From Phallusia mammillata (Eukaryota): DNA of 64,000 nucleotides. Shown here in pieces: positions 749-38,588 of the stretch (the stretch's first letter is position 1; each line of letters starts with the position of its first letter). The notes under the pieces are model-generated. The model was not told the DNA's origin, ran no database searches, and saw nothing but the letters and a program-made list of their open reading frames with translations. The stretch is taken from the NCBI GenBank assembly GCA_965637545.1, contig OZ281497.1, positions 9,114,001 through 9,178,000 on the forward strand. Direction: 5' to 3'. A program made the position numbers and the translations under genes.

Positions 749-3700
749 TCATATAAACCTATACATTAAATCAAAACCTTTATCAGTTACTGAACCATCT
801 GTCATGAATGCAATAAACATGTCAGTTGACGTTGAATTAAGGTAAGAGCCTATCGGTGGATTGGCAGAAATTCGTGGGGAGCTCGTAGACAGGCCATCAA
901 ACAATAAAAGATAGTCGCAACAGTCTTCTAATGCAATATCAGCAACGTAAATTTCAACCATATAGCCATAATACGGAGCATGAATGCTCCAAGTAGTGCA
1001 AATGTCATTTAGGTAGTTGTTGGGATAATTAATGGATGTAAAGCTGTTATAATAGGAAGAGGCATTTAGGTGCTGAGTATCGTTACAACTTGCCGGGAGA
1101 GTCAATTGGTAAATGAAATTAAAGCCGCTACTTGTTACTATTTGATCAGTCACTAAATTTATATGTATGAAGCGGGATACAAATGGTTCGGTTGGATAAC
1201 TACTCCCAGTTAGGTTTGTTGTGCCTTTATCCGTAAATATTGTAACAAAATCATAATTGTATTCTAAGTCGAGATCGACAATTTCCAATGATACCCAAAG
1301 GCCGTAGCTCCCATAGATATACCACCAGCAATCAATATTGTTATAATATTGGTCGGGATAGTTTGGCGAGGATACGTAATAATATTGACCAATTTGTGGA
1401 TACAAATACTCCCAATTACAAGTTTCATTGCGAAGCGAATCAGTAGTGTTAGCAATTACACCGGGAACAGTTGTACCCATCACAGGAGTTGTTTCGTTTG
1501 CCGGAGCAATTTCAACATGATATGTAAAGTTAAAACCACGACTTGTTACAGTACCATCAGTGATAAACCGAATATTCATATAATCAATAGAAGTAACAGT
1601 TCCATTAGGGCGATCAGTACCGTACAAGGTCATACTAAAATCATAACCATATATTGCAACATAATCATAATAATTTTCTAAACTTATGTCAATTACATCC
1701 AATAAAATCAACTCATTGTAAGCATAGATATACCACCAGCAATAAATATCATTGTAATATTGACCGGGATAATTAGGAGATGACAAGTAATAGTATTGAC
1801 CCGTTTGTGGGTATAAATATTCATAGCCACAAGTTTCGTTGCCAGTTGTTTCGTTTGTTAAAGCACTTTCCACATAGTACATAAAGTTAAAACCACGGCT
1901 TGTTACAGAACCATCAGTAACAAAATTTATATCCATCCAATTTTTGGCAATAATCGTTTCATTCGGAGCACTGGTACCATACAAGCTGGTTAAAAGGCCG
2001 CCTTGGAAGTATATTGAAACATAATCATAGCTGTACTCTAAACTTAAATCAATTACATCCAATGAAATCCAATCATAGTAGGCATAGATATACCAACGGC
2101 AATTAATATTGTTATAATACTGCCCAGGATAGTTAGGGGAAGTCAAGTAATAGTATTGACCTGTTTGAGGATATAAATATTCATAGTTACAAGTTTCATT
2201 GGGAAGTAAATCAGTGGTGTTAGGAACCACACCAGAAACAGTGGTCCCTACAACAGGAGTTGTTTCAATTGCCGAAGCATTTCCAACAAAATATGTAAAG
2301 TTAAATCCTCTTCTTGTTACGGAACCATCCGTTACAAAGTTAATCCCCATGAATCGGCTCGCAACAAATTGCTCGTTAGTGAAACCTGAGCCAGTTAAGG
2401 TTGCAATAGAGCCATTTTGGTCTCTCAGATCAACATAATCGAAGGAGTTTTCTAAATCCAAATCCAAAACTTGCAAAGTGATTGACTCATATAAGTAAGA
2501 ATAAATATGCCACACACAATTGATGTTGTTATAGTACTGGTTGGGATAGTTGGGCGAAGTCAAATAATAATAGTAATCACTATTTTGTGGATATAAATCT
2601 ACATGTCCACAAGTTTCATTGCCAATCGAGCCAGTTGTGTTCGAAATCACACCAGGAGTTGTTGTCGTAACAGGCATAGTTTGTGTTGTCAAACTAATTG
2701 TACCAACCGAAGTTAACGCCCTAAAACCAGTTTTTGATTTGGAACAATCAGAAGTCAAATGCAACGACATACTACTTCCGGTGGACTGGTACAAGGTAAA
2801 ATTGTTCTGATTGGTTAATGCACCAGATAAAATGGCAATCACTGGACCGTGTAAGGAGTTACCGTCATAGATGGTGAGTCGATCGCAGCATTCCTCGATG
2901 TCGATATCGACGATATTGAGTTGAACCACTTTATCGTCAGGCACACGAACCAACCACGCGATGTCAGCAGAGTTGGGATAGGGTTGAGGATAGTTGGGAG
3001 AAAATATTTCACCCACCAAATTCTCAACAGTGGAGCCAGAAAGATCAAAAAGCACCTGAGCTCTGTTTTGTATCTTCACACCGGAGTCGATCATGTCTTG
3101 CACAGTTTCTTTGTACTCGATGTTGAAGGTGACCTCCTTGTTGCCTTTGATGTGGACCGTGTTCTTTGCAGTTTGAATGTCAATGTTGAAATCATCTTTA
3201 AAAAGGACAGTGTAACTTTAAACAAAAGTAATCTAAATAGCAACAAACTTAGATTTTTTTGTCCTTATTAGTAGAGATGTACCGAATATTCGGTTTGCCG
3301 AATTTATTCGGCCGAATCGGCCACTTTTGCAAAGATTCGGTTTCGGCCGAATAATTTGTTGCGATTCGGCCGAAACCGAATCTTTTACGAACACTCATTT
3401 AAAGCGTTATACGTGTTTTTTTCTGCTTAGTACCAACGAAATCGCGTCAATCATTATATTTTTTTAACACATTGTCGCTTTTCCCACTGCAGACGGAAAT
3501 CAGTAATTCATTGTGGGGTTGGCAATCAATGTTATACCTCACTGAACTAAAATAAGGACGAAACAAAACCATTCTGCACTTATTGCCTGGTAGAACAACT
3601 TATGTTTTCATGTCAAACGCGTAGGGTACGAATTCGCGTGACGTCATAAATGATTCGGTTGATTCGGCCGAATTTATTCGGCAAAACCGCCGAATATTCG

Positions 3701-4790
3701 GTTTCGGCCGAATCGAAATTTCGCCGATTCGGTACATCACTACTTATTAGTCGATTTAAGTTATAAGTAGTAACCCACATAAATATTTAGTTAAACCTAA
3801 ACCGACCTAAACGTTTTGTCGAATGCATGGCAGCCACGTGATCATTCCTCTTTGCTTTTTCGAGCACCTCTTGCGCCTCCTTGTGGTTGGTTTTTCTTCC
3901 CTTGTACGCCACCCCTTCGGTGTGCATTGTAAATGACGTCATCTCTGCGTAGTCGGGAAGGTAAGTGTGAAATCCGACGTCATCGGCTGTTTCACCAGAG
4001 TTCATGATTGTGACCTTCAGGTTTTGAACGTCATTGAATGCTGGTGAGGGAATGGGCCACGTGACTTTTGCCTAAAACGTTATAGAAATGGGTGAAAATA
4101 TTTGTTTTGCCAAAAATGTTAAATGGAATCCATGAACCAAATACCTAGGGTTGCCATCCACACGGAACCGAAAATAGAACCGATAAATTAAGTTTCCATA
4201 CGAAACGAAACAAACGTTTTCGAATAAATCTATGCATTTATACGAACCATGACATATTTTATGCGACAATCAATCTGTTCCAGCAACTCCTTGTTTGTAG
4301 AAAATACTTTATGCATCTTAGGAAGGCTCAGGTTTACATTTTTACTTGTAGCAGGGATTTGATTTGTAATTGTCGAAAATAAAACAAAATAAGGACACAA
4401 GTCAAAACGAAGGACATTTTTTTAGAAATAAGGACGATATGACAACCCTGCTTATACCACTAACTAAGTCATGTTCCAAATGAACAACGAGGTACAGCTT
4501 ATACATACCCATCAGAATATGAAACGATATAAAATATGAAACGTACTACAACACAAATTCACTGATGTCCCTTGTTGGCGGACTGTTGGTACTGAGAGTA
4601 AGTCTAGATTTAAACCCCCAAAAAAAAAAAACACAAAAAAAAAACAGAAAAATATATTTCTACCTACTTTTTCGTAGATTGGTTGGGGAAAAAGTCCAAC
4701 GACAAAAGCTTCGTCGTCTTTCGTCGCATCACAAAAGCAGATCAAAGTCCCCAGAAAATATATTAAAGCTAAAAACTCGTAATAAAGCAT
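749..4790 (-). CDS. Secreted VIT-like domain + six CUB domain protein (4 exons, ~960-970 aa)
   Basis: Exon 1 4790-4664: ATG at 4790, hydrophobic signal peptide MLYYEFLALIYFLGTLICFCDA. Exon 2 4603-4563, after a 60-nt GT-AG intron. Exon 3 4071-3807 (or -3797). Exon 4 3195 (or 3215)-749. Phases are compatible for both exon 3/4 junction options. Exon 4 has six SPNYP/SINYP-type CUB motifs, each with a W strand, E-x-x-x-D and T/S-D motifs. Exon 3 resembles the ITIH VIT domain (N...F...LP..A..T.F.M...G..Y.G......EAQ). No C-terminal TM or GPI signal. AATAAA on the minus strand at 541-546. Confidence 0.85.
3272..3742. mobile_element. Non-autonomous hAT-type DNA transposon (MITE), intact
   Basis: TIRs TAGAGATGTACCGA / TCGGTACATCACTA (1 mismatch). 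Perfect 8-bp TSD CTTATTAG at 3264-3271 and 3743-3750. Many subterminal CCGAAT/ATTCGG motifs. Lies in intron 3 of the CUB gene. Confidence 0.92.
4146..4450. mobile_element. Degenerate MITE (AGGGTTGYCA termini)
   Basis: Left end TAGGGTTGCCA, right end TGACAACCCTG. Flanks CAAATACC / CTTATACC match at 6 of 8 positions, a possible decayed hAT TSD. Confidence 0.5.
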
Positions 4791-8644: not shown

Positions 8645-11600
8645 TCATTTAATGTAGAGTTTATAGATTTCGTTGCCATTGATATCGTCTAACGGCATTT
8701 TTCCATTCTTTCGCCGCCGTACAGCACGATGGACCTTCTCGAGCGCTTCAAAATCGTTGTCGGAAAATTCTGACTCTAACCCGAGCTTGTAAGTTGGCTT
8801 GTTGTTGGCCTTCGACTCGCCATTTTGCGTTTTGTCAAGGTTTAGCGTCGGATTTTCCCGCACAGGAACGGCAACCTTCTCGAGGTGTGAAAATGCATTT
8901 GCGTAAACCTGGGGATGGCGGATCTTCGCTGTGAATTTCAGTTGTTTCGGTCGCATAGAGAGATTGTAAACGCCCTCAAGCTCCGGTGGATGGTCAGAAT
9001 CCGGCTCCAGTTCGGCCACACTGAAAAAGGTGGCCATAAAATGCATGAGCAGGAGACGAGAGATTTCATCGCCAGGGCATTTTCGTATACCAGTGGAAAA
9101 TGATAAATAGCGTTCGTGCGGTTTGTGCACGAGCGAACCGTCAGAGTTTAGGAACCTGTATGGGTCAAAATCATCGGCGTTTTCCCACGCACCATCGTCA
9201 CGATTCGCTGCATATTGATTCACAAAAATGATGGAATTTTCTGGAATATGATATTGACCCAGGGTTGTAGGCTCGGTGGTACTGTGCGGGATCGTGGAGG
9301 GAGTAAAGGACGAGTGACGGAAGATCTCATGCAGAACAGCCTCGGTAAAAGGAAAGTTGTGACGGTCGTCGATGGTCGGTAAACGCCGGCCGCGAAGTGT
9401 GCGGTCAAGTTCATCTTTAATCTGCAAAAGAGCAACGAATTACATACACTGAAACCCTTGGCCAAAATGTTTCAAGTTTTGACATTTAATGCAAAATGTA
9501 CGTTAAGATATAATCAATAAATAAATATAAACGAACTTATAGAACTATTGCTGACAGCGAAATAAAAACAGATAAAACAGCTTTAAAATCGGTTAATCCC
9601 CAAAACAGCAGCGTACGTTAGATTGATCTTTAAAAATCGTGTTTTTAAGGGAAATCTTAACGTTGACAAATGTTGCGACAATTTCTTTGCACTAAAAAAT
9701 TATTTCAACATCTAAAGCAGAGCTAATGCTGCAAAAACAACGCATATCTATAAAATACAGACAAAAAAACAACAATTATATTATATAAGCTACCAAAAAA
9801 TTACCTTTTGCTGATGATCAGTGAAATAAATAAGGTACAGGAAAATCCACTGGATGATGGTAGAGAGCGTATCCTGACCCGCCCCGAAGACGTCGGTTGT
9901 TAAGGCAATCACGTCTTCCTCGGTCATATTGACCTTAGGATTGTCGATGCTCTCTGCAATGTACGTGTCCACTACATCTCGTACAACGCCGTGTACGTAC
10001 GTTTGGCGATGTTCCTTGCTCCTATACACGAGATGGCGCATTAGAGCAGGTTTGGCAGAGATTGACTGACAAGCGATGGCCAGTGTAATGTATAGACAAT
10101 GGTTTGTCAGTAAAAATCTTGTTTACAAAGAAACTAACGTTTTAAAACGCAAGCACAAGCAAAACGTTTGCAAAAACATATACTGGCTACTGCTCAAAAG
10201 ACAAGTAACATTTTTCTTTTTGGGGGGTATAATAAAAAATATTTTTGCTATAATCAATAAAAATGCTTAGTATAAGTTTGCGTTATTGCCCAAAAGACTC
10301 AACTATTTGTGAAACAATCTATACTGTACACAAGGAACCAAAAAAGTATCCAAGTACTTCCAAGAACAGCTAAAGTAACCAACTACTATCCAAGAACAGC
10401 TAAGGGATTAGTGAATGACTTTGCTCGTTATGGTCCACTAGTAACTTGTACGTCATAGGGGCTTATAAGGTCACTTTGTTGTGACAGTCACACCTACTTA
10501 ATGAAGTGCAAGACATACCGTGCAATCATCCAGTTATTCGTACGGTTGTTCAAGAAATCGAAGGTCTTGACAACGTTGGCGAATTTAGGTATTACCTGCA
10601 AGAAATGGAAAGGTTTGGTTTAGTTTTGTTAAACACAATTTAGCTATTAGAATCCTAAATAACAAATCTATCATTGGTTCAACCAGCATAACGATTTTTT
10701 AAATGGTGTTTGTTGGGTCCAAATGTAAAAAATATTGTCAGGAAAAACGATTCAAAAGGGGTTTTACTCTTTTGCACACTCGACAAAAGTAGTTCAAAAA
10801 TGGTTAAAAATTGATTCAATTGTTTCGCATGAAACAGTTGTTTGCAAACATTTAACCGAGGTGTCTCACAAAGATATGCAGTACAAGGCAAGAGTATTAA
10901 GATTTTACGTCCATAGCTCAAAAAGACCAAAAGTAAAATACTGTAAAATTCTGTGTAAAACATACTGGAAAAACGTAGTACTGTAAAATTCGAGAAAAAA
11001 TAAGTTGTTTCAACATCGAAACAGATGTGTCGCAATCGTTCAGGATAAGCCAACTAAAACGCCCTTTCGGAGCTAAGGACTGAAATCCCCTTTTATACGC
11101 GCCTGGGCCAGCTGTGCATGGGTCTAAACAGCAAGGTATGGTCGGAATGCAAGGGGCTCCTAGTTTTCATAGAGGTTCCTGTCAGTAATGGTGTTGCCCG
11201 CTCTCGAAGATGTGCCCGAGCGTGCAGCAACGACACAACGATGCTCTTTATGACGTAATAAGTCTCCCATGACGCCGCGGCGTGCCGGAGGCGGGTTCAC
11301 GCGTCCGGAGCCCGAGTCGGTTTGTCATGTGACTTGGGTGGGACAATGGCAGAACATGACTTGCCTTTTCATTTTCGAAACGCAGTTTCTTTTCTATAGG
11401 CCTGTTGAACCGTTGTAACCCTTGCTAGGTTAGTAGGAGAGACCCGCCATTTACAAAGTGCGTTATCTTAGATTAAAACCATATTCGTTCAAACTTTTAG
11501 TAGCACTTTTGGAAACAACGGCCATGGAATATTTTTCTATGGTCTGATTGGAAAGAAAGTTTTGTTGTTTGCGTAAATCGCTTTCCATCTGACAATCCGT

Positions 11601-35600: not shown

Positions 35601-38588
35601 CCACAGTTTATTTACCGGTGATCCTCCGTGATTCCGACGCCTGACGCATTCTATTGTCTAAACTTCGGCAAACATTGCGCGCTAAACCCAATGTATTGTC
35701 TTGCGGCAATTCCGTATGCCAGATCATTCTCTGACACGCCACTAATCCTCGAAAGCCGGTTGGCATTTCAAGTCAGTGAAGGGTCGCATGTTGCTCATGA
35801 CTGATTCAAATGATAATCTCCGAAACAATTTTCTTGGCATTCTAGTTCATCAGTTCAATCGCTCTTGCAGATGCTGTGTTGCCACTTGCCAGTTTTTAAA
35901 TCGAACATTTTTCAGAAAAATATATCGCAATCCACAACGATTTGCGTAAAATCATTCTTCTAGTTTCGTTTTCCGCAACATTGCTGTGTTCGTTTTTGAT
36001 GTTATTCATGTTTTTTGTTAGTATTTTTGTGTTAAGCTTTTATTATGTCATGTATTGTTGTTTTTGCTTTGCTACTCCAACCCCACAACCCCAACATGAG
36101 CACTTTTTACTTATTAAATAAACAGTAACGGGTCAGCCAGTGTTTAACCTTTCACTGACCCTGTCACGCAGTTATTTTTTCGTTTGTGTAACTTATTTCC
36201 TTTTTAAAGCGGGGCATTAAAGTATTAAATTGAATTGGAAACTAACACAGTATTGGCGAGGTGTATTTGAACTATTTTCGCGTAAAAACAATTTTACAAA
36301 TATTATCACATCAGTAATTTGAGCTGAATCAAGTTCGTCATGCATAAGCACCAAGTACATAGTTTGCGGATGGTTTTATTGATAAAAAAGCACGTCTCCA
36401 CTTGCACCCTAATATTTCATACCACGGGGCATTAAGTGGTAGACATTTGATCTATCACAACAATGCAACGACTTATTTGTCTAATGTTACACAACACCTT
36501 AGCGGGTTTGCATCTACGCCCCATAATCTACGCGACATTTTCCAATAGGATTAAAACAGCCACGAAAAGGGGTGTCAACAAAACCTTTGGCGGAAAAGCC
36601 TTGACAGACGATCTCAAGAGTTTCCATTTTCCTTATCAAAAAATCGTATGTTAACCTTTATGGTGCTTACATAATAGTTTATATCATGTTAAGCGTTAAC
36701 TCTAATTAAAAAGCTTGCGTAATGGTCATTGCCCCCCGCTGGCATGTTACATGTGATGCAGACACAAGGCTTAAGGATCGGGGCTCTCGTGCAGCCTCTC
36801 CGCTGCTTAAATGGCGACCGACGGCAAACGCGTGAACTCGCCACTCAAAGATGACCCCATAAACAAACAAGAGACAGCTTTGGTCGGCAGACGCTTCCTC
36901 AAACAGAAACCAAGGCTCTATTGCAGGCCCACACCGCCGCGGGGATAGCTTAACGCGAAGCCGAGGACAGTTGCTGCATCCTAATCCTGTAAGTGCGAGT
37001 CAGGGGAGCAGCTTTTATCGTCGGTCGCGTCGCTGGGAGCTCACCTCGTTAACATACCGAGGCTGATGGGTTTTTTTCCAAACAACCGAACAAGGCGTTC
37101 AAGTCGAACCTAAGCGCGGCGAATTGGCAAATGTCACGCGAACTCAACGATACGGGTCGAACCACTGGCGATCAAACACGATAAGACAAGCGTAAACACG
37201 ATAAAAATATCGAATTATCATGGAGCGGCCGGTTCGCACCGGAAGGCCATCGAACCCCAAAAGATTCACAAGCGTTGTCATAGCGACGCTTTTCGAAACA
37301 GGGAATGCCGTGCGGCCAGACAAAAGCTTTTTCGAGCGGAAATTGAAGCTGAAGTTCATGTAGGCTGATTATTGGCCGCTAAAAGGGCATTTTCTGGCTG
37401 CCTGAGGGATTTGTAGGCATCGGTGCATTTCAACAACTTAATAAATTTCCTCGAATTTTAAATGCGCAGTTTCGGTTCGGGCGAAATCAATTGAAACGGT
37501 CGCAGACCCCATGGGAACTTTATCAGAATCGTCCGTATTATTCACACCGGTTATTTGAAAAACTATTTACAATCATGGATCGTGTCAACCAAACGCATCA
37601 TTAAAAATTGTTGGACGTAATGTAAATTAATGAACGTACCTTGTTTGAATACTCGTAGCGATGTCCGAACATCATGGCACAGACGAGATTGGCAACGCCA
37701 ACTTGAATGATATTCTCTGCTGCATTCTCCTCTTTTGATTTTCCGCACAGTTCCTTGACCAAGTGCAATGTCTCCGTACGGACGTGACGACACAACAAAC
37801 CACGTGTTTCCGACTTTGACGTAAACCGATGCAAAAGTTTGATGACCACTCGCTTCATGTCTGTCCATTTCTGTCCAAGACTTAACTCGCTGTTAAAGAC
37901 GATTCCTCTGCCTTGTGAAATTTGGCGAAACGAGTTGAATTGCGGGCGACCGGAAAATACTCGACCCTGTCGTTGGAGGGCGTCCCGGATCACCTTGTAA
38001 CTGTTTAGGACGATTACGTCGACATTTCCAAGCTTCATGAGGTAGATGTTGCCGTATCTGTTGAACAAAAACATTTTAATCAAATAATAACAGTTTGCTC
38101 ATGCTGCATGCCTTTGTCTAATTTATACCAAGTGTACATTATTGAAATGGGTTCTAGTCAGTGGTGTGATTAAGCCTGTTCGCACCGGTTCTACAGAACT
38201 GTCTCACGAAATTTTATGAAATCAGCGAACCGATTAGCATTACCGATTACTGTCAATTGACTATTTGTAAAAGAACCGGCTAAAAAATATGACTTTTGTG
38301 ATAGAACCGGCTGACAAAAAAATTGGTTATAGTTGATATATTTGAACCAATCTTTGAAAGGCGACTGTACAAAACTTACTTTTTTGCCATGGCTTGCATA
38401 GACTGCTGTGGTTTGTCGCCAAGTGACAAAGCATTGCCTATCACTGGCCAAGGAAAAGGACCTGGTATGTTCGGCCGAGAAGAGAAGTACGAAAATATTT
38501 TCCGAAGCAGAAAGAGCAGCAAGATTGAAATGACCATTTCAGCTTTGAAGTCGTCCAGAAACTCAACTACTTTGAATAGCAAAGACAT
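8645..38588 (-). CDS. CYP1: Cytochrome P450 family 1 (CYP1B/1C clade, tunicate CYP1F-like), 6 exons, ~594 aa
   Basis: Exons 38588-38380, 38057-37640, 15735-15649, 10595-10519, 10021-9805 and 9421-8645. All junctions are GT-AG, phases match, and the total is 1785 nt. Motifs: N-terminal anchor + PGPFPWPVIGN, FSGRP, VANLVCAMMFG, GSQIDVMPW, I-helix DVFGAGQDTLSTIIQW (CYP1B1 has DIFGASQDTLSTALQW), ExxR (EIFR), PYRF and heme motif FSTGIRKCPG. The subfamily name needs phylogeny. Confidence 0.92.
16887..16931. repeat. Truncated hAT/Charlie-like MITE end
   Basis: CAGGGGTCGACAACTTGTGGCTC...GCGGCCCC resembles the termini of the elements at 31590 and 47497. No partner TIR seen. Confidence 0.4.
31590..31805. 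mobile_element. hAT/Charlie-like MITE
   Basis: TIRs CAGGGGTCGGCAACC / GGTTGCCGACCACTG. Flanks CTTTAGTG / CCTAAGTG match at 6 of 8 positions. Confidence 0.75.
32506..32604 (+). repeat. Tandem repeat, 3 x 33 bp
   Basis: Unit TTTACAGATTTCAAAAAGTCGTTTGAAAAACT(A/G), three head-to-tail copies with no spacers. Confidence 0.95.
38159..38335. repeat. Dispersed MITE family (CAGTGGTG(G/T)GATT terminus), copy 2, in CYP intron 1
   Basis: Shares AGAACTGTCTCACGAAATTTTATGARATCAGCGAACCG with 51168-51255. Its 3' half matches the reverse complement of 6271-6410. Confidence 0.75.

Follow-up and report, generated by a model that had tools for sequence, protein, structure and literature searches.

A gene that joins a VIT domain to six CUB domains, and has no vWA domain, very probably lies intact on the minus strand of a stretch of Phallusia mammillata DNA, at positions 749-4790, and belongs to a family of similarly built proteins in other ascidians. 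The stretch, called the window below, is 64,000 nucleotides (nt) long and covers positions 9,114,001 to 9,178,000 of contig OZ281497.1 (GenBank assembly GCA_965637545.1); positions are counted from its first letter. Three coding exons can be read, and both the anatomy of the gene and its family membership are supported by homologous proteins, by a homologous gene in Ciona and by profile searches. The combination of VIT and CUB without vWA is a real new domain combination, lineage-specific and conserved, and is less singular than was held in the original prediction, which had been made from the letters of the window.

Gene structure and splice junctions

All features of the gene lie on the minus strand, and its coding exons run from 4790 to 4668, from 4071 to 3807 and from 3195 to 749. 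Coding exon 1 (4668..4790) opens with an ATG at 4790-4788 and translates as MLYYEFLALIYFLGTLICFCDATKDDEAFVVGLFPQPIYEK; by translation and hydrophobicity it contains a signal peptide and the motif AFVVGLFPQPIYEK, a family-conserved element that aligns with (A/V)YVVGLFPEPVYE in the homologs from Ciona and Clavelina. Its donor, AAA/GTAGGT after 4668, is in phase 0, and is followed by an intron of 596 nt (4072..4667) whose splice signals are read from the sequence. Coding exon 2 (3807..4071; 88 codons and one nt) encodes the VIT core. It lies between the acceptor ttttag before 4071 and the donor TTAG/GTCGGT after 3807, which is in phase 1, and its peptide starts with VTIMNSGETADDVGFHTYLPDYAEM, as the original prediction had quoted it. 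The second intron (3196..3806) is 611 nt long and consists mostly of an insertion that resembles a miniature inverted-repeat transposable element (MITE).

The large coding exon 3 (749..3195) begins after the acceptor tttttaaag and encodes the tail of the VIT domain and all six CUB domains, up to a stop codon at 751-749. The VIT tail occupies 3104..3195 and reads D DFNIDIQTAKNTVHIKGNKEVTFNIEYKET, which aligns to DRNSELQSESVNVHIKGEKKMTFNLDYTES in Ciona. Since the domain is split between exons 2 and 3, the two must be spliced for it to be whole. In the list of open reading frames (ORFs) of the window, this exon appears as a 784-codon ORF at 749-3103 that begins at an internal GTG, while the same frame is open upstream to 3217.

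The homologs from Ciona and Clavelina match the three exons in a colinear manner by tblastn, and their residue numbering runs on from one side of intron 2 to the other (127 to 128 in P0002, 121 to 124 in P0004, and 125 to 127 in P0007). Similar to the gene in Phallusia, the Ciona gene (locus L001) has three coding exons. Its exon 1 ends with ..VYET/gtaagt in phase 0, where the homologous residue here is ..IYEK/, and its exon 2 ends with ..PLP+G/gtaaaa in phase 1, at the position of ..KRL+G/ here. That both introns of the Ciona gene sit at the same places and in the same phases (0 and 1) supports the junction 3807/3195. Splicing at 3797/3215 would also keep the reading frame, but the protein would gain ten residues without a counterpart in any homolog, and the phase-1 intron of Ciona contradicts this junction.

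The exon chain had originally been drawn with four exons; its VIT and CUB exons stand, while the count does not, as three coding exons were found. Of the two options given for the last junction, 3807/3195 proved right, both by gapless alignment to the homologs and by the position and phase of the Ciona intron. The warning that the ORF list starts this frame at an internal GTG was accurate as well, that codon being found at 3103.

Domains of the predicted protein

Exon 2 alone matches the Pfam VIT profile (PF08487) with E 9.4e-8 and 32.7 bits over profile positions 25-94, the curated cut-off of this profile being 26.5 bits. The remainder of the domain, ..VHIKGNKEVTFNIEYKE, stands at the start of the large exon and aligns to the part of the homologs that is matched up to profile position 111. 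The first 18-24 positions of the profile are unmatched by Pfam in the window protein and in every homolog scanned. When the N-terminal profile of the family (A1) is compared with the PDB, ITIH4 (9c4f, E 1.7e-6) and ITIH1 (6fpy, E 1.6e-4) are matched at chain residues 42-156. In a set of 1.84 billion representative proteins the family profile finds 110 matches at E<=1e-3, nine of which contain CUB by a local profile; eight of these are members of the family or fragments of them, and the ninth is an ITIH4-like protein of Styela clava (isoform X4, XP_039268562.1, P0189). Ten non-family matches were scanned (the nine closest full-length ones and P0189), and VIT is joined to vWA in eight, three of which also have ITI_HC_C. 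The VIT call, a prediction, is carried by these sequence profiles: the Pfam score above the cut-off, the profile matches in the PDB, and the VIT-vWA architecture of the nearest non-family matches.

The Styela protein resembles the family in being a tunicate protein with both VIT and CUB. It differs in its canonical VIT domain (97 bits), its vWA domain and its single C-terminal CUB, and neither its VIT nor its CUB stands nearer to the VIT-CUB family than the corresponding domains of other animals do. Among the ten proteins scanned, it is the only one with the combination VIT-vWA-CUB. Other arrangements were encountered in the same search. P0139 (1083 aa), a match of the profile search, has three VIT domains and no vWA, and P0130 (1948 aa), from a beetle, combines two VIT matches, five Kunitz domains and vWA in one chain.

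In ITIH1, the sandwich of the VIT domain takes one strand from the C-terminal region (PMC10539598). The present family is without this C-terminal region, hence its VIT sandwich must be completed in another way or stay open. As a hypothesis only, the N-terminal motif VVGLFPxPxYE, which is strictly conserved and falls in a strand predicted with low confidence, is a candidate for the strand that would complete the sandwich.

The large exon matches the Pfam CUB profile (PF00431) six times, with E 8.5e-80. CUB1 (2711..3046) is matched by Pfam CUB and by CDCP1_CUB_6, and is also placed by alignment and by its cysteine map. CUB2 (2285..2617), which follows a Thr/Pro-rich linker with N-glycosylation sequons, is supported by the same three kinds of evidence. 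CUB3 (1865..2197) is placed by alignment, CUB4 (1508..1837) and CUB5 (1103..1426) by Pfam and alignment, and CUB6 (749..1093), which runs directly into the stop codon, by its cysteine map and alignment. Pairwise identity within CUB2-5 is 51-67%, against 24-35% to CUB1 and CUB6; the high mutual identity indicates that a unit of linker plus CUB was duplicated within the array to form its middle part. Thr/Pro-rich linkers that carry N-glycosylation sites stand between the domains from CUB1 to CUB5, this composition being seen ahead of CUB2, CUB3 and CUB5 (for example, TTPVVGTTVSGVVPNTTDLLPNETC), while CUB5 and CUB6 are only three residues apart.

The cysteines of the array are unevenly arranged. 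Each of CUB2-5 has only the first canonical disulfide pair. CUB1 is without the N-terminal pair and has a Cys-Cys doublet and a cysteine inside the D-x-S Ca2+ motif, and CUB6 has the first pair together with a Cys-Cys doublet. The total of 15 cysteines in the large exon is odd, so that one thiol may stay free or form a disulfide with another molecule. The doublets of CUB1 and CUB6 sit where PCPE-1 has the Tyr that stabilises the ligand lysine.

A hydrophobic core of the kind found in signal peptides is present at residues 6-20, as judged by eye and by a hydropathy scan of the first 20 residues, without a trained predictor. After CUB6 there is no transmembrane segment, no tail of the glycosylphosphatidylinositol type and no hydrophobic C-terminus. 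With its chain ending in this way, the protein is predicted to be soluble. With 20 N-x-S/T sequons in the large exon, the product is predicted from its sequence to be a secreted and heavily glycosylated protein of ~945 residues.

A vWA domain was sought in two ways. No exon of the gene has a Pfam match to it, and tblastn of six ITIH-like VIT-vWA proteins against the 64-kb window finds neither vWA nor ITI_HC_C (PF06668). These queries match the window by VIT only, at 3814-4020, with P0189 matching additionally by CUB; the same six also give two marginal matches to the VIT tail (E 0.3-0.6). The domain order originally proposed is therefore borne out by Pfam and by tblastn of the window: a signal peptide, whose hydrophobic core is found at the start of exon 1, then a VIT-like domain, for which the PF08487 score on exon 2 and the profile homology to ITIH4 and ITIH1 speak, running directly into six CUB domains with no vWA. 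The suggested check of these six domains against PF00431 came out positive.

Comparison with known systems places the gene outside each of them. ITIH1-6 (ITIH1 and ITIH4 having been solved as 6fpy and 9c4f) are likewise secreted and have an N-terminal VIT that is homologous by profile. In contrast to the window protein, which is without all of these parts, they have vWA with its metal-ion-dependent adhesion site (MIDAS), hybrid domains and ITI_HC_C. Cubilin, PCPE-1, the neuropilins and TSG-6 share with the window protein CUBs with three acidic residues at the Ca2+ site, CUB5-8 of cubilin being the best solved match. Cubilin has 27 CUBs. The window protein has six, with VIT at the N-terminus, and is without EGF repeats or the amnionless-binding N-terminus; unlike cubilin-type CUBs, its CUB2-5 keep only the first disulfide, and mucin-like linkers stand from CUB1 to CUB5. 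DMBT1 is a secreted protein whose repeated domains are separated by Ser/Thr/Pro-rich spacers and which contains CUB domains. Secretion, repeats with such spacers and CUBs are common to DMBT1 (gp340) and the window protein, and DMBT1 is the RefSeq name given to the Ciona homologs. In a Pfam scan that covered the exons of the window and seven homologs from ascidians and metagenomes, no SRCR or ZP domain appears; the name reflects CUB similarity only. The gene is not ITIH, DMBT1 or cubilin, as the defining features of each are missing from it.

An ascidian family with variable CUB arrays

In Ciona intestinalis two members are predicted, XP_078495680.1 (959 aa, VIT and six CUBs) and XP_026689840.1 (822 aa, VIT and five CUBs), and in Ciona savignyi a fragment, H2YDJ1. 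Clavelina lepadiformis has at least eight proteins of this kind, under the accessions XP_076805322.1, CAK8682023.1, XP_076809046.1, XP_076809594.1, XP_076803384.1, CAK8682024.1/25.1 and CAK8681942.1. The three of them scanned with Pfam (P0007, P0011 and P0019) contain VIT and 3-6 CUBs, and a local profile finds 3-4 CUBs in three more. Consecutive accession numbers suggest that some of the Clavelina genes lie in tandem clusters. In the source databases the members are named DMBT1-like, cubilin-like, tolloid-like or CUB domain-containing.

The proteins of Ciona and Clavelina share with the window protein all the marks of the family: a signal peptide, the motif VVGLFPxPxYE, a VIT domain, a CUB array (3-6 CUBs) and no vWA; the window gene also has the phase-1 split of VIT. 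They differ in that their CUB number varies, that they are computer predictions only, and that the window copy has diverged at a conserved motif, reading HVAAMHST where the family has HNAAVYIP. By tblastn over the VIT exon, the Ciona proteins and Clavelina P0007 are 48-57% identical to the window protein, while the two other Clavelina proteins compared reach 32-41%. The CUB arrays are ~35% identical to those of other genera. When the Ciona VIT region was used in a word-based search, the two Ciona proteins were the only matches.

The closest relatives of all are found among unlabelled contig ORFs from ENA and JGI: P0125 and P0126 for the VIT exon, and P0001 and P0003 for the CUB exon. P0001, a metagenome-contig ORF and the best CUB match, has a VIT tail and seven CUBs. 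No VIT core exon is present within the 10 kb fetched upstream of it, which contain a retroelement. In Ciona, a gene call of 305 residues with CUB only (L001 16126-17043, chromosome AP043567.1) lies directly downstream of the VIT-CUB gene and may be a partial tandem paralog. By tblastx, the VIT-CUB gene alone is common to the window and the Ciona locus, whose SNF transporter and Cupin_8 neighbours are not in the window. Three ENA fragments from the Clavelina clusters (P0232, P0242 and P0247) were considered as spliced VIT/CUB transcripts and rejected, as all of them lie inside the CUB exon.

In full-text literature searches aimed at the family, neither a VIT+CUB protein nor the Ciona gene was found to have been described. 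The view that a VIT domain before six CUBs is an unfamiliar design holds for the literature searched; it does not hold as a peculiarity of this gene, since a Ciona/Clavelina family with this design is publicly predicted. Proteins with VIT and CUB are thus present and automatically annotated, as had been allowed for, while a description of them was not found. The expectation that the protein is lineage-specific is in line with the family having been seen so far only in ascidians, in one profile search of limited reach.

Two sequencing runs that contain the locus are DNA, with exons, introns and flanking sequence covered at an even depth of ~90 in one run and ~300 in the other. At >=90% likeness, the depth of DNA contigs is ~4-11x single-copy over 2658-3245, ~10x at CUB1 (2805-3098), ~2-5x over the VIT exon (3834-4127) and near single copy over CUB2-6, bearing in mind that summed word depth is no copy number, as the tool itself warns. 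This suggests several further paralogs whose heads are nearly the same as this one, while their CUB arrays have diverged.

Both introns are repeat-filled. Intron 1 contains a high-copy repeat at ~4128-4568, with a word depth of ~25,000, against ~90 for single-copy sequence, in one DNA run (X1) and of 62,000-104,000 in the other (X2). The MITE-like element of intron 2 (3264-3750, ~487 bp) reaches a word depth of up to 4e5, also against ~90. It is bounded by terminal inverted repeats of 24 nt (CTTATTAGTAGAGATGTACCGAAT and its complement), which occupy 3264-3287 and 3727-3750, contains nested TTCGGCCGAA palindromes, and also appears in sequencing runs guessed to be RNA. A contig of single-copy depth, found in both DNA runs, matches the locus to 3203 and resumes at 3804, skipping 600 nt. 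The skip is close to intron 2 but is offset from it by 8 and 3 nt, and the contig is probably an allele or paralog with a MITE-less intron rather than a processed copy.

Elsewhere in the window, two exon-sized ORFs on the minus strand match cytochrome P450, one at 8645-9427 with the C-terminal part of the profile (E 1e-37) and the other at 37601-38083 with the N-terminal part (E 1e-16). At least one predicted P450 gene is located upstream of the VIT-CUB gene.

Proposed mode of action and alternatives

The best solved relatives of CUB3 are cubilin CUB5-8 (3kq4, E 2.3e-17), PCPE-1 (6fzv), the neuropilins and TSG-6. In cubilin, PCPE-1, neuropilin and TSG-6, three acidic residues bind Ca2+ and also seize a lysine or arginine of the ligand. 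In PCPE-1, cubilin and the complement proteases, the acidic residues of the Ca2+ site grasp a basic side chain of the ligand (PMC6372009). The site residues of PCPE-1 are taken from the same paper, from which the numbering of the structure chain is offset by 4. When CUB3 is aligned with CUB2 of PCPE-1, the equivalents of Glu183, Tyr190, the following Asp and Asp233 are kept, and in an alignment of the six CUBs the three acidic columns are E, D and D in every domain.

It is tempting to speculate, from these residues, that the protein would work in the extracellular space, with mucus, gut, blood, tunic and egg coat as candidate sites, as an elongated and multivalent molecule that binds or cross-links other proteins in a Ca2+-dependent manner. 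The Ca2+ sites of its CUBs would clamp lysine or arginine side chains of partner proteins, and the VIT head would provide a separate, second docking surface. Without a MIDAS-bearing vWA and without a glycosaminoglycan-attached C-terminal domain, the protein could not act as an ITIH heavy chain. The family would have taken an ITIH-type VIT module without the vWA and C-terminal parts, and would have spread by tandem duplication in ascidians. Ca2+-dependent binding, taken by itself, is a tentative proposal with somewhat less than an even chance of being right; the whole explanation, in which it is blended with the firmer reading of anatomy and family, is moderately favoured. An environment- or gamete-facing role would be fitted, which is not to say proven, by the ~35% identity of the CUBs between genera, by the variable CUB number and by tandem duplication.

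Several observations weigh against parts of this picture. Pfam VIT scores across the family are 23.9-32.7 bits, which is near the cut-off. A fold model of the Ciona homolog (P0004:18-174, from the 106-row alignment A2) is a beta-sandwich with one long helix (predicted local distance difference test score 78.5, predicted template modelling score 0.72; low confidence in the first 26 residues). In a Foldseek search with this model ITIH1 comes second, with a probability of 0.99 but with E 0.013 and a template modelling score of 0.36. VIA-align gives ITIH1 a Z of 3.7 and a root-mean-square deviation of 4.4 over 107 residues, under the level that the tool regards as meaningful. Its top rows, above ITIH1, are taken at Z 5-5.6 by unrelated domains with which bacterial adhesins bind collagen; these too are under the meaningful level and are not read as homologs of VIT. 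Twelve small runs guessed to be RNA contain 2-3% of the words of the locus, and the two that were aligned touch only the intron repeats; these runs comprise 16-34 million letters of contigs each, with tissue and stage not on record, and are no proof of absence. The restriction of the family to ascidians is so far drawn from one search of limited reach with a divergent profile. At the Ca2+ sites the stabilising Tyr is kept in three of the six domains (CUB3-5), its place being taken by Phe in CUB2 and by Cys in CUB1 and CUB6, and Ca2+ binding and the ligands of the six CUBs are inferred from residue conservation only.

Explanations that dispute the gene itself have to be set against this evidence. 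The junctions have no RNA support in the species, which counts in favour of a reading where the VIT exons and the CUB exon belong to separate transcripts and their fusion is an artefact. Against such an artefact, the last VIT strands are encoded on the CUB exon, and neither piece would fold alone; moreover, the phases are compatible (0/0 and 1/1), the intron positions and phases in Ciona are identical, and gene models of two other species also join VIT and CUB, which leaves separate transcripts with only a very slim chance. Slighter again, to the point of being negligible, is the chance of an ordinary ITIH-like gene (VIT, vWA and C-terminal domain), its vWA exons having been missed within the introns or in the flanking sequence. 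VIT is usually accompanied by vWA, as in eight of the ten nearest non-family matches, and the Styela protein has VIT, vWA and CUB in one chain. However, the six ITIH-like queries find nothing for vWA or ITI_HC_C in the window, the introns have just 596 and 611 nt and are filled with repeats, the stop codon follows immediately after CUB6, and the RefSeq models in Ciona and Clavelina are equally without vWA. A more serious doubt, to which a small probability is given, is that the gene looks intact and yet is a silent or decaying member of a tandem family that has expanded recently. The twelve small runs give no RNA signal, the VIT exon and CUB1 stand at 5-10x single-copy depth, implying several near-identical heads elsewhere, and the HNAAVYIP motif has changed. 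Decay is countered by a 2.4-kb exon that is open throughout, by two introns that are both GT...AG, and by cysteines and acidic site residues that are kept in all six CUBs, and silence by the tiny size and unrecorded origin of the runs, which makes them no proof of absence.

Other alternatives accept the gene and dispute how the protein works. ITI_HC_C provides the residue by which ITIH is attached to glycosaminoglycan. A matrix stabiliser of the ITIH kind, covalently transferred onto glycosaminoglycan and with CUBs in place of vWA, is suggested by the homology of the VIT domain to that of ITIH1 and ITIH4, and by the presence, among the closest solved CUBs, of the CUB of TSG-6, the enzyme of heavy-chain transfer. 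Since ITI_HC_C is absent and the protein ends at CUB6, this mode is very unlikely. Rather less improbable, yet still unlikely, is that VIT without vWA, as an innovation of ascidians, serves as the constant head of a family whose CUB arrays vary in number and sequence. A multi-copy head joined to a near-single-copy CUB2-6 is the pattern expected of a family that has diversified for recognition at a surface exposed to the outside. If this were true, it would point to recognition, for example in mucosal or humoral defence or in a gamete coat.

The preferred reading remains a secreted VIT-CUB protein that would bind its partners through Ca2+ sites. By itself, the finding opens no long-standing question. 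Its more immediate use concerns annotation: the names DMBT1-like, cubilin-like and tolloid-like given to proteins of Ciona and Clavelina are misleading and could be corrected. To our knowledge, VIT is widespread, and its own function is poorly understood because it is nearly always paired with vWA. A conserved family with VIT placed immediately ahead of its CUB arrays thus offers a natural setting in which to study the function of VIT alone, and it adds a lineage-specific set of secreted proteins to the sister group of vertebrates.

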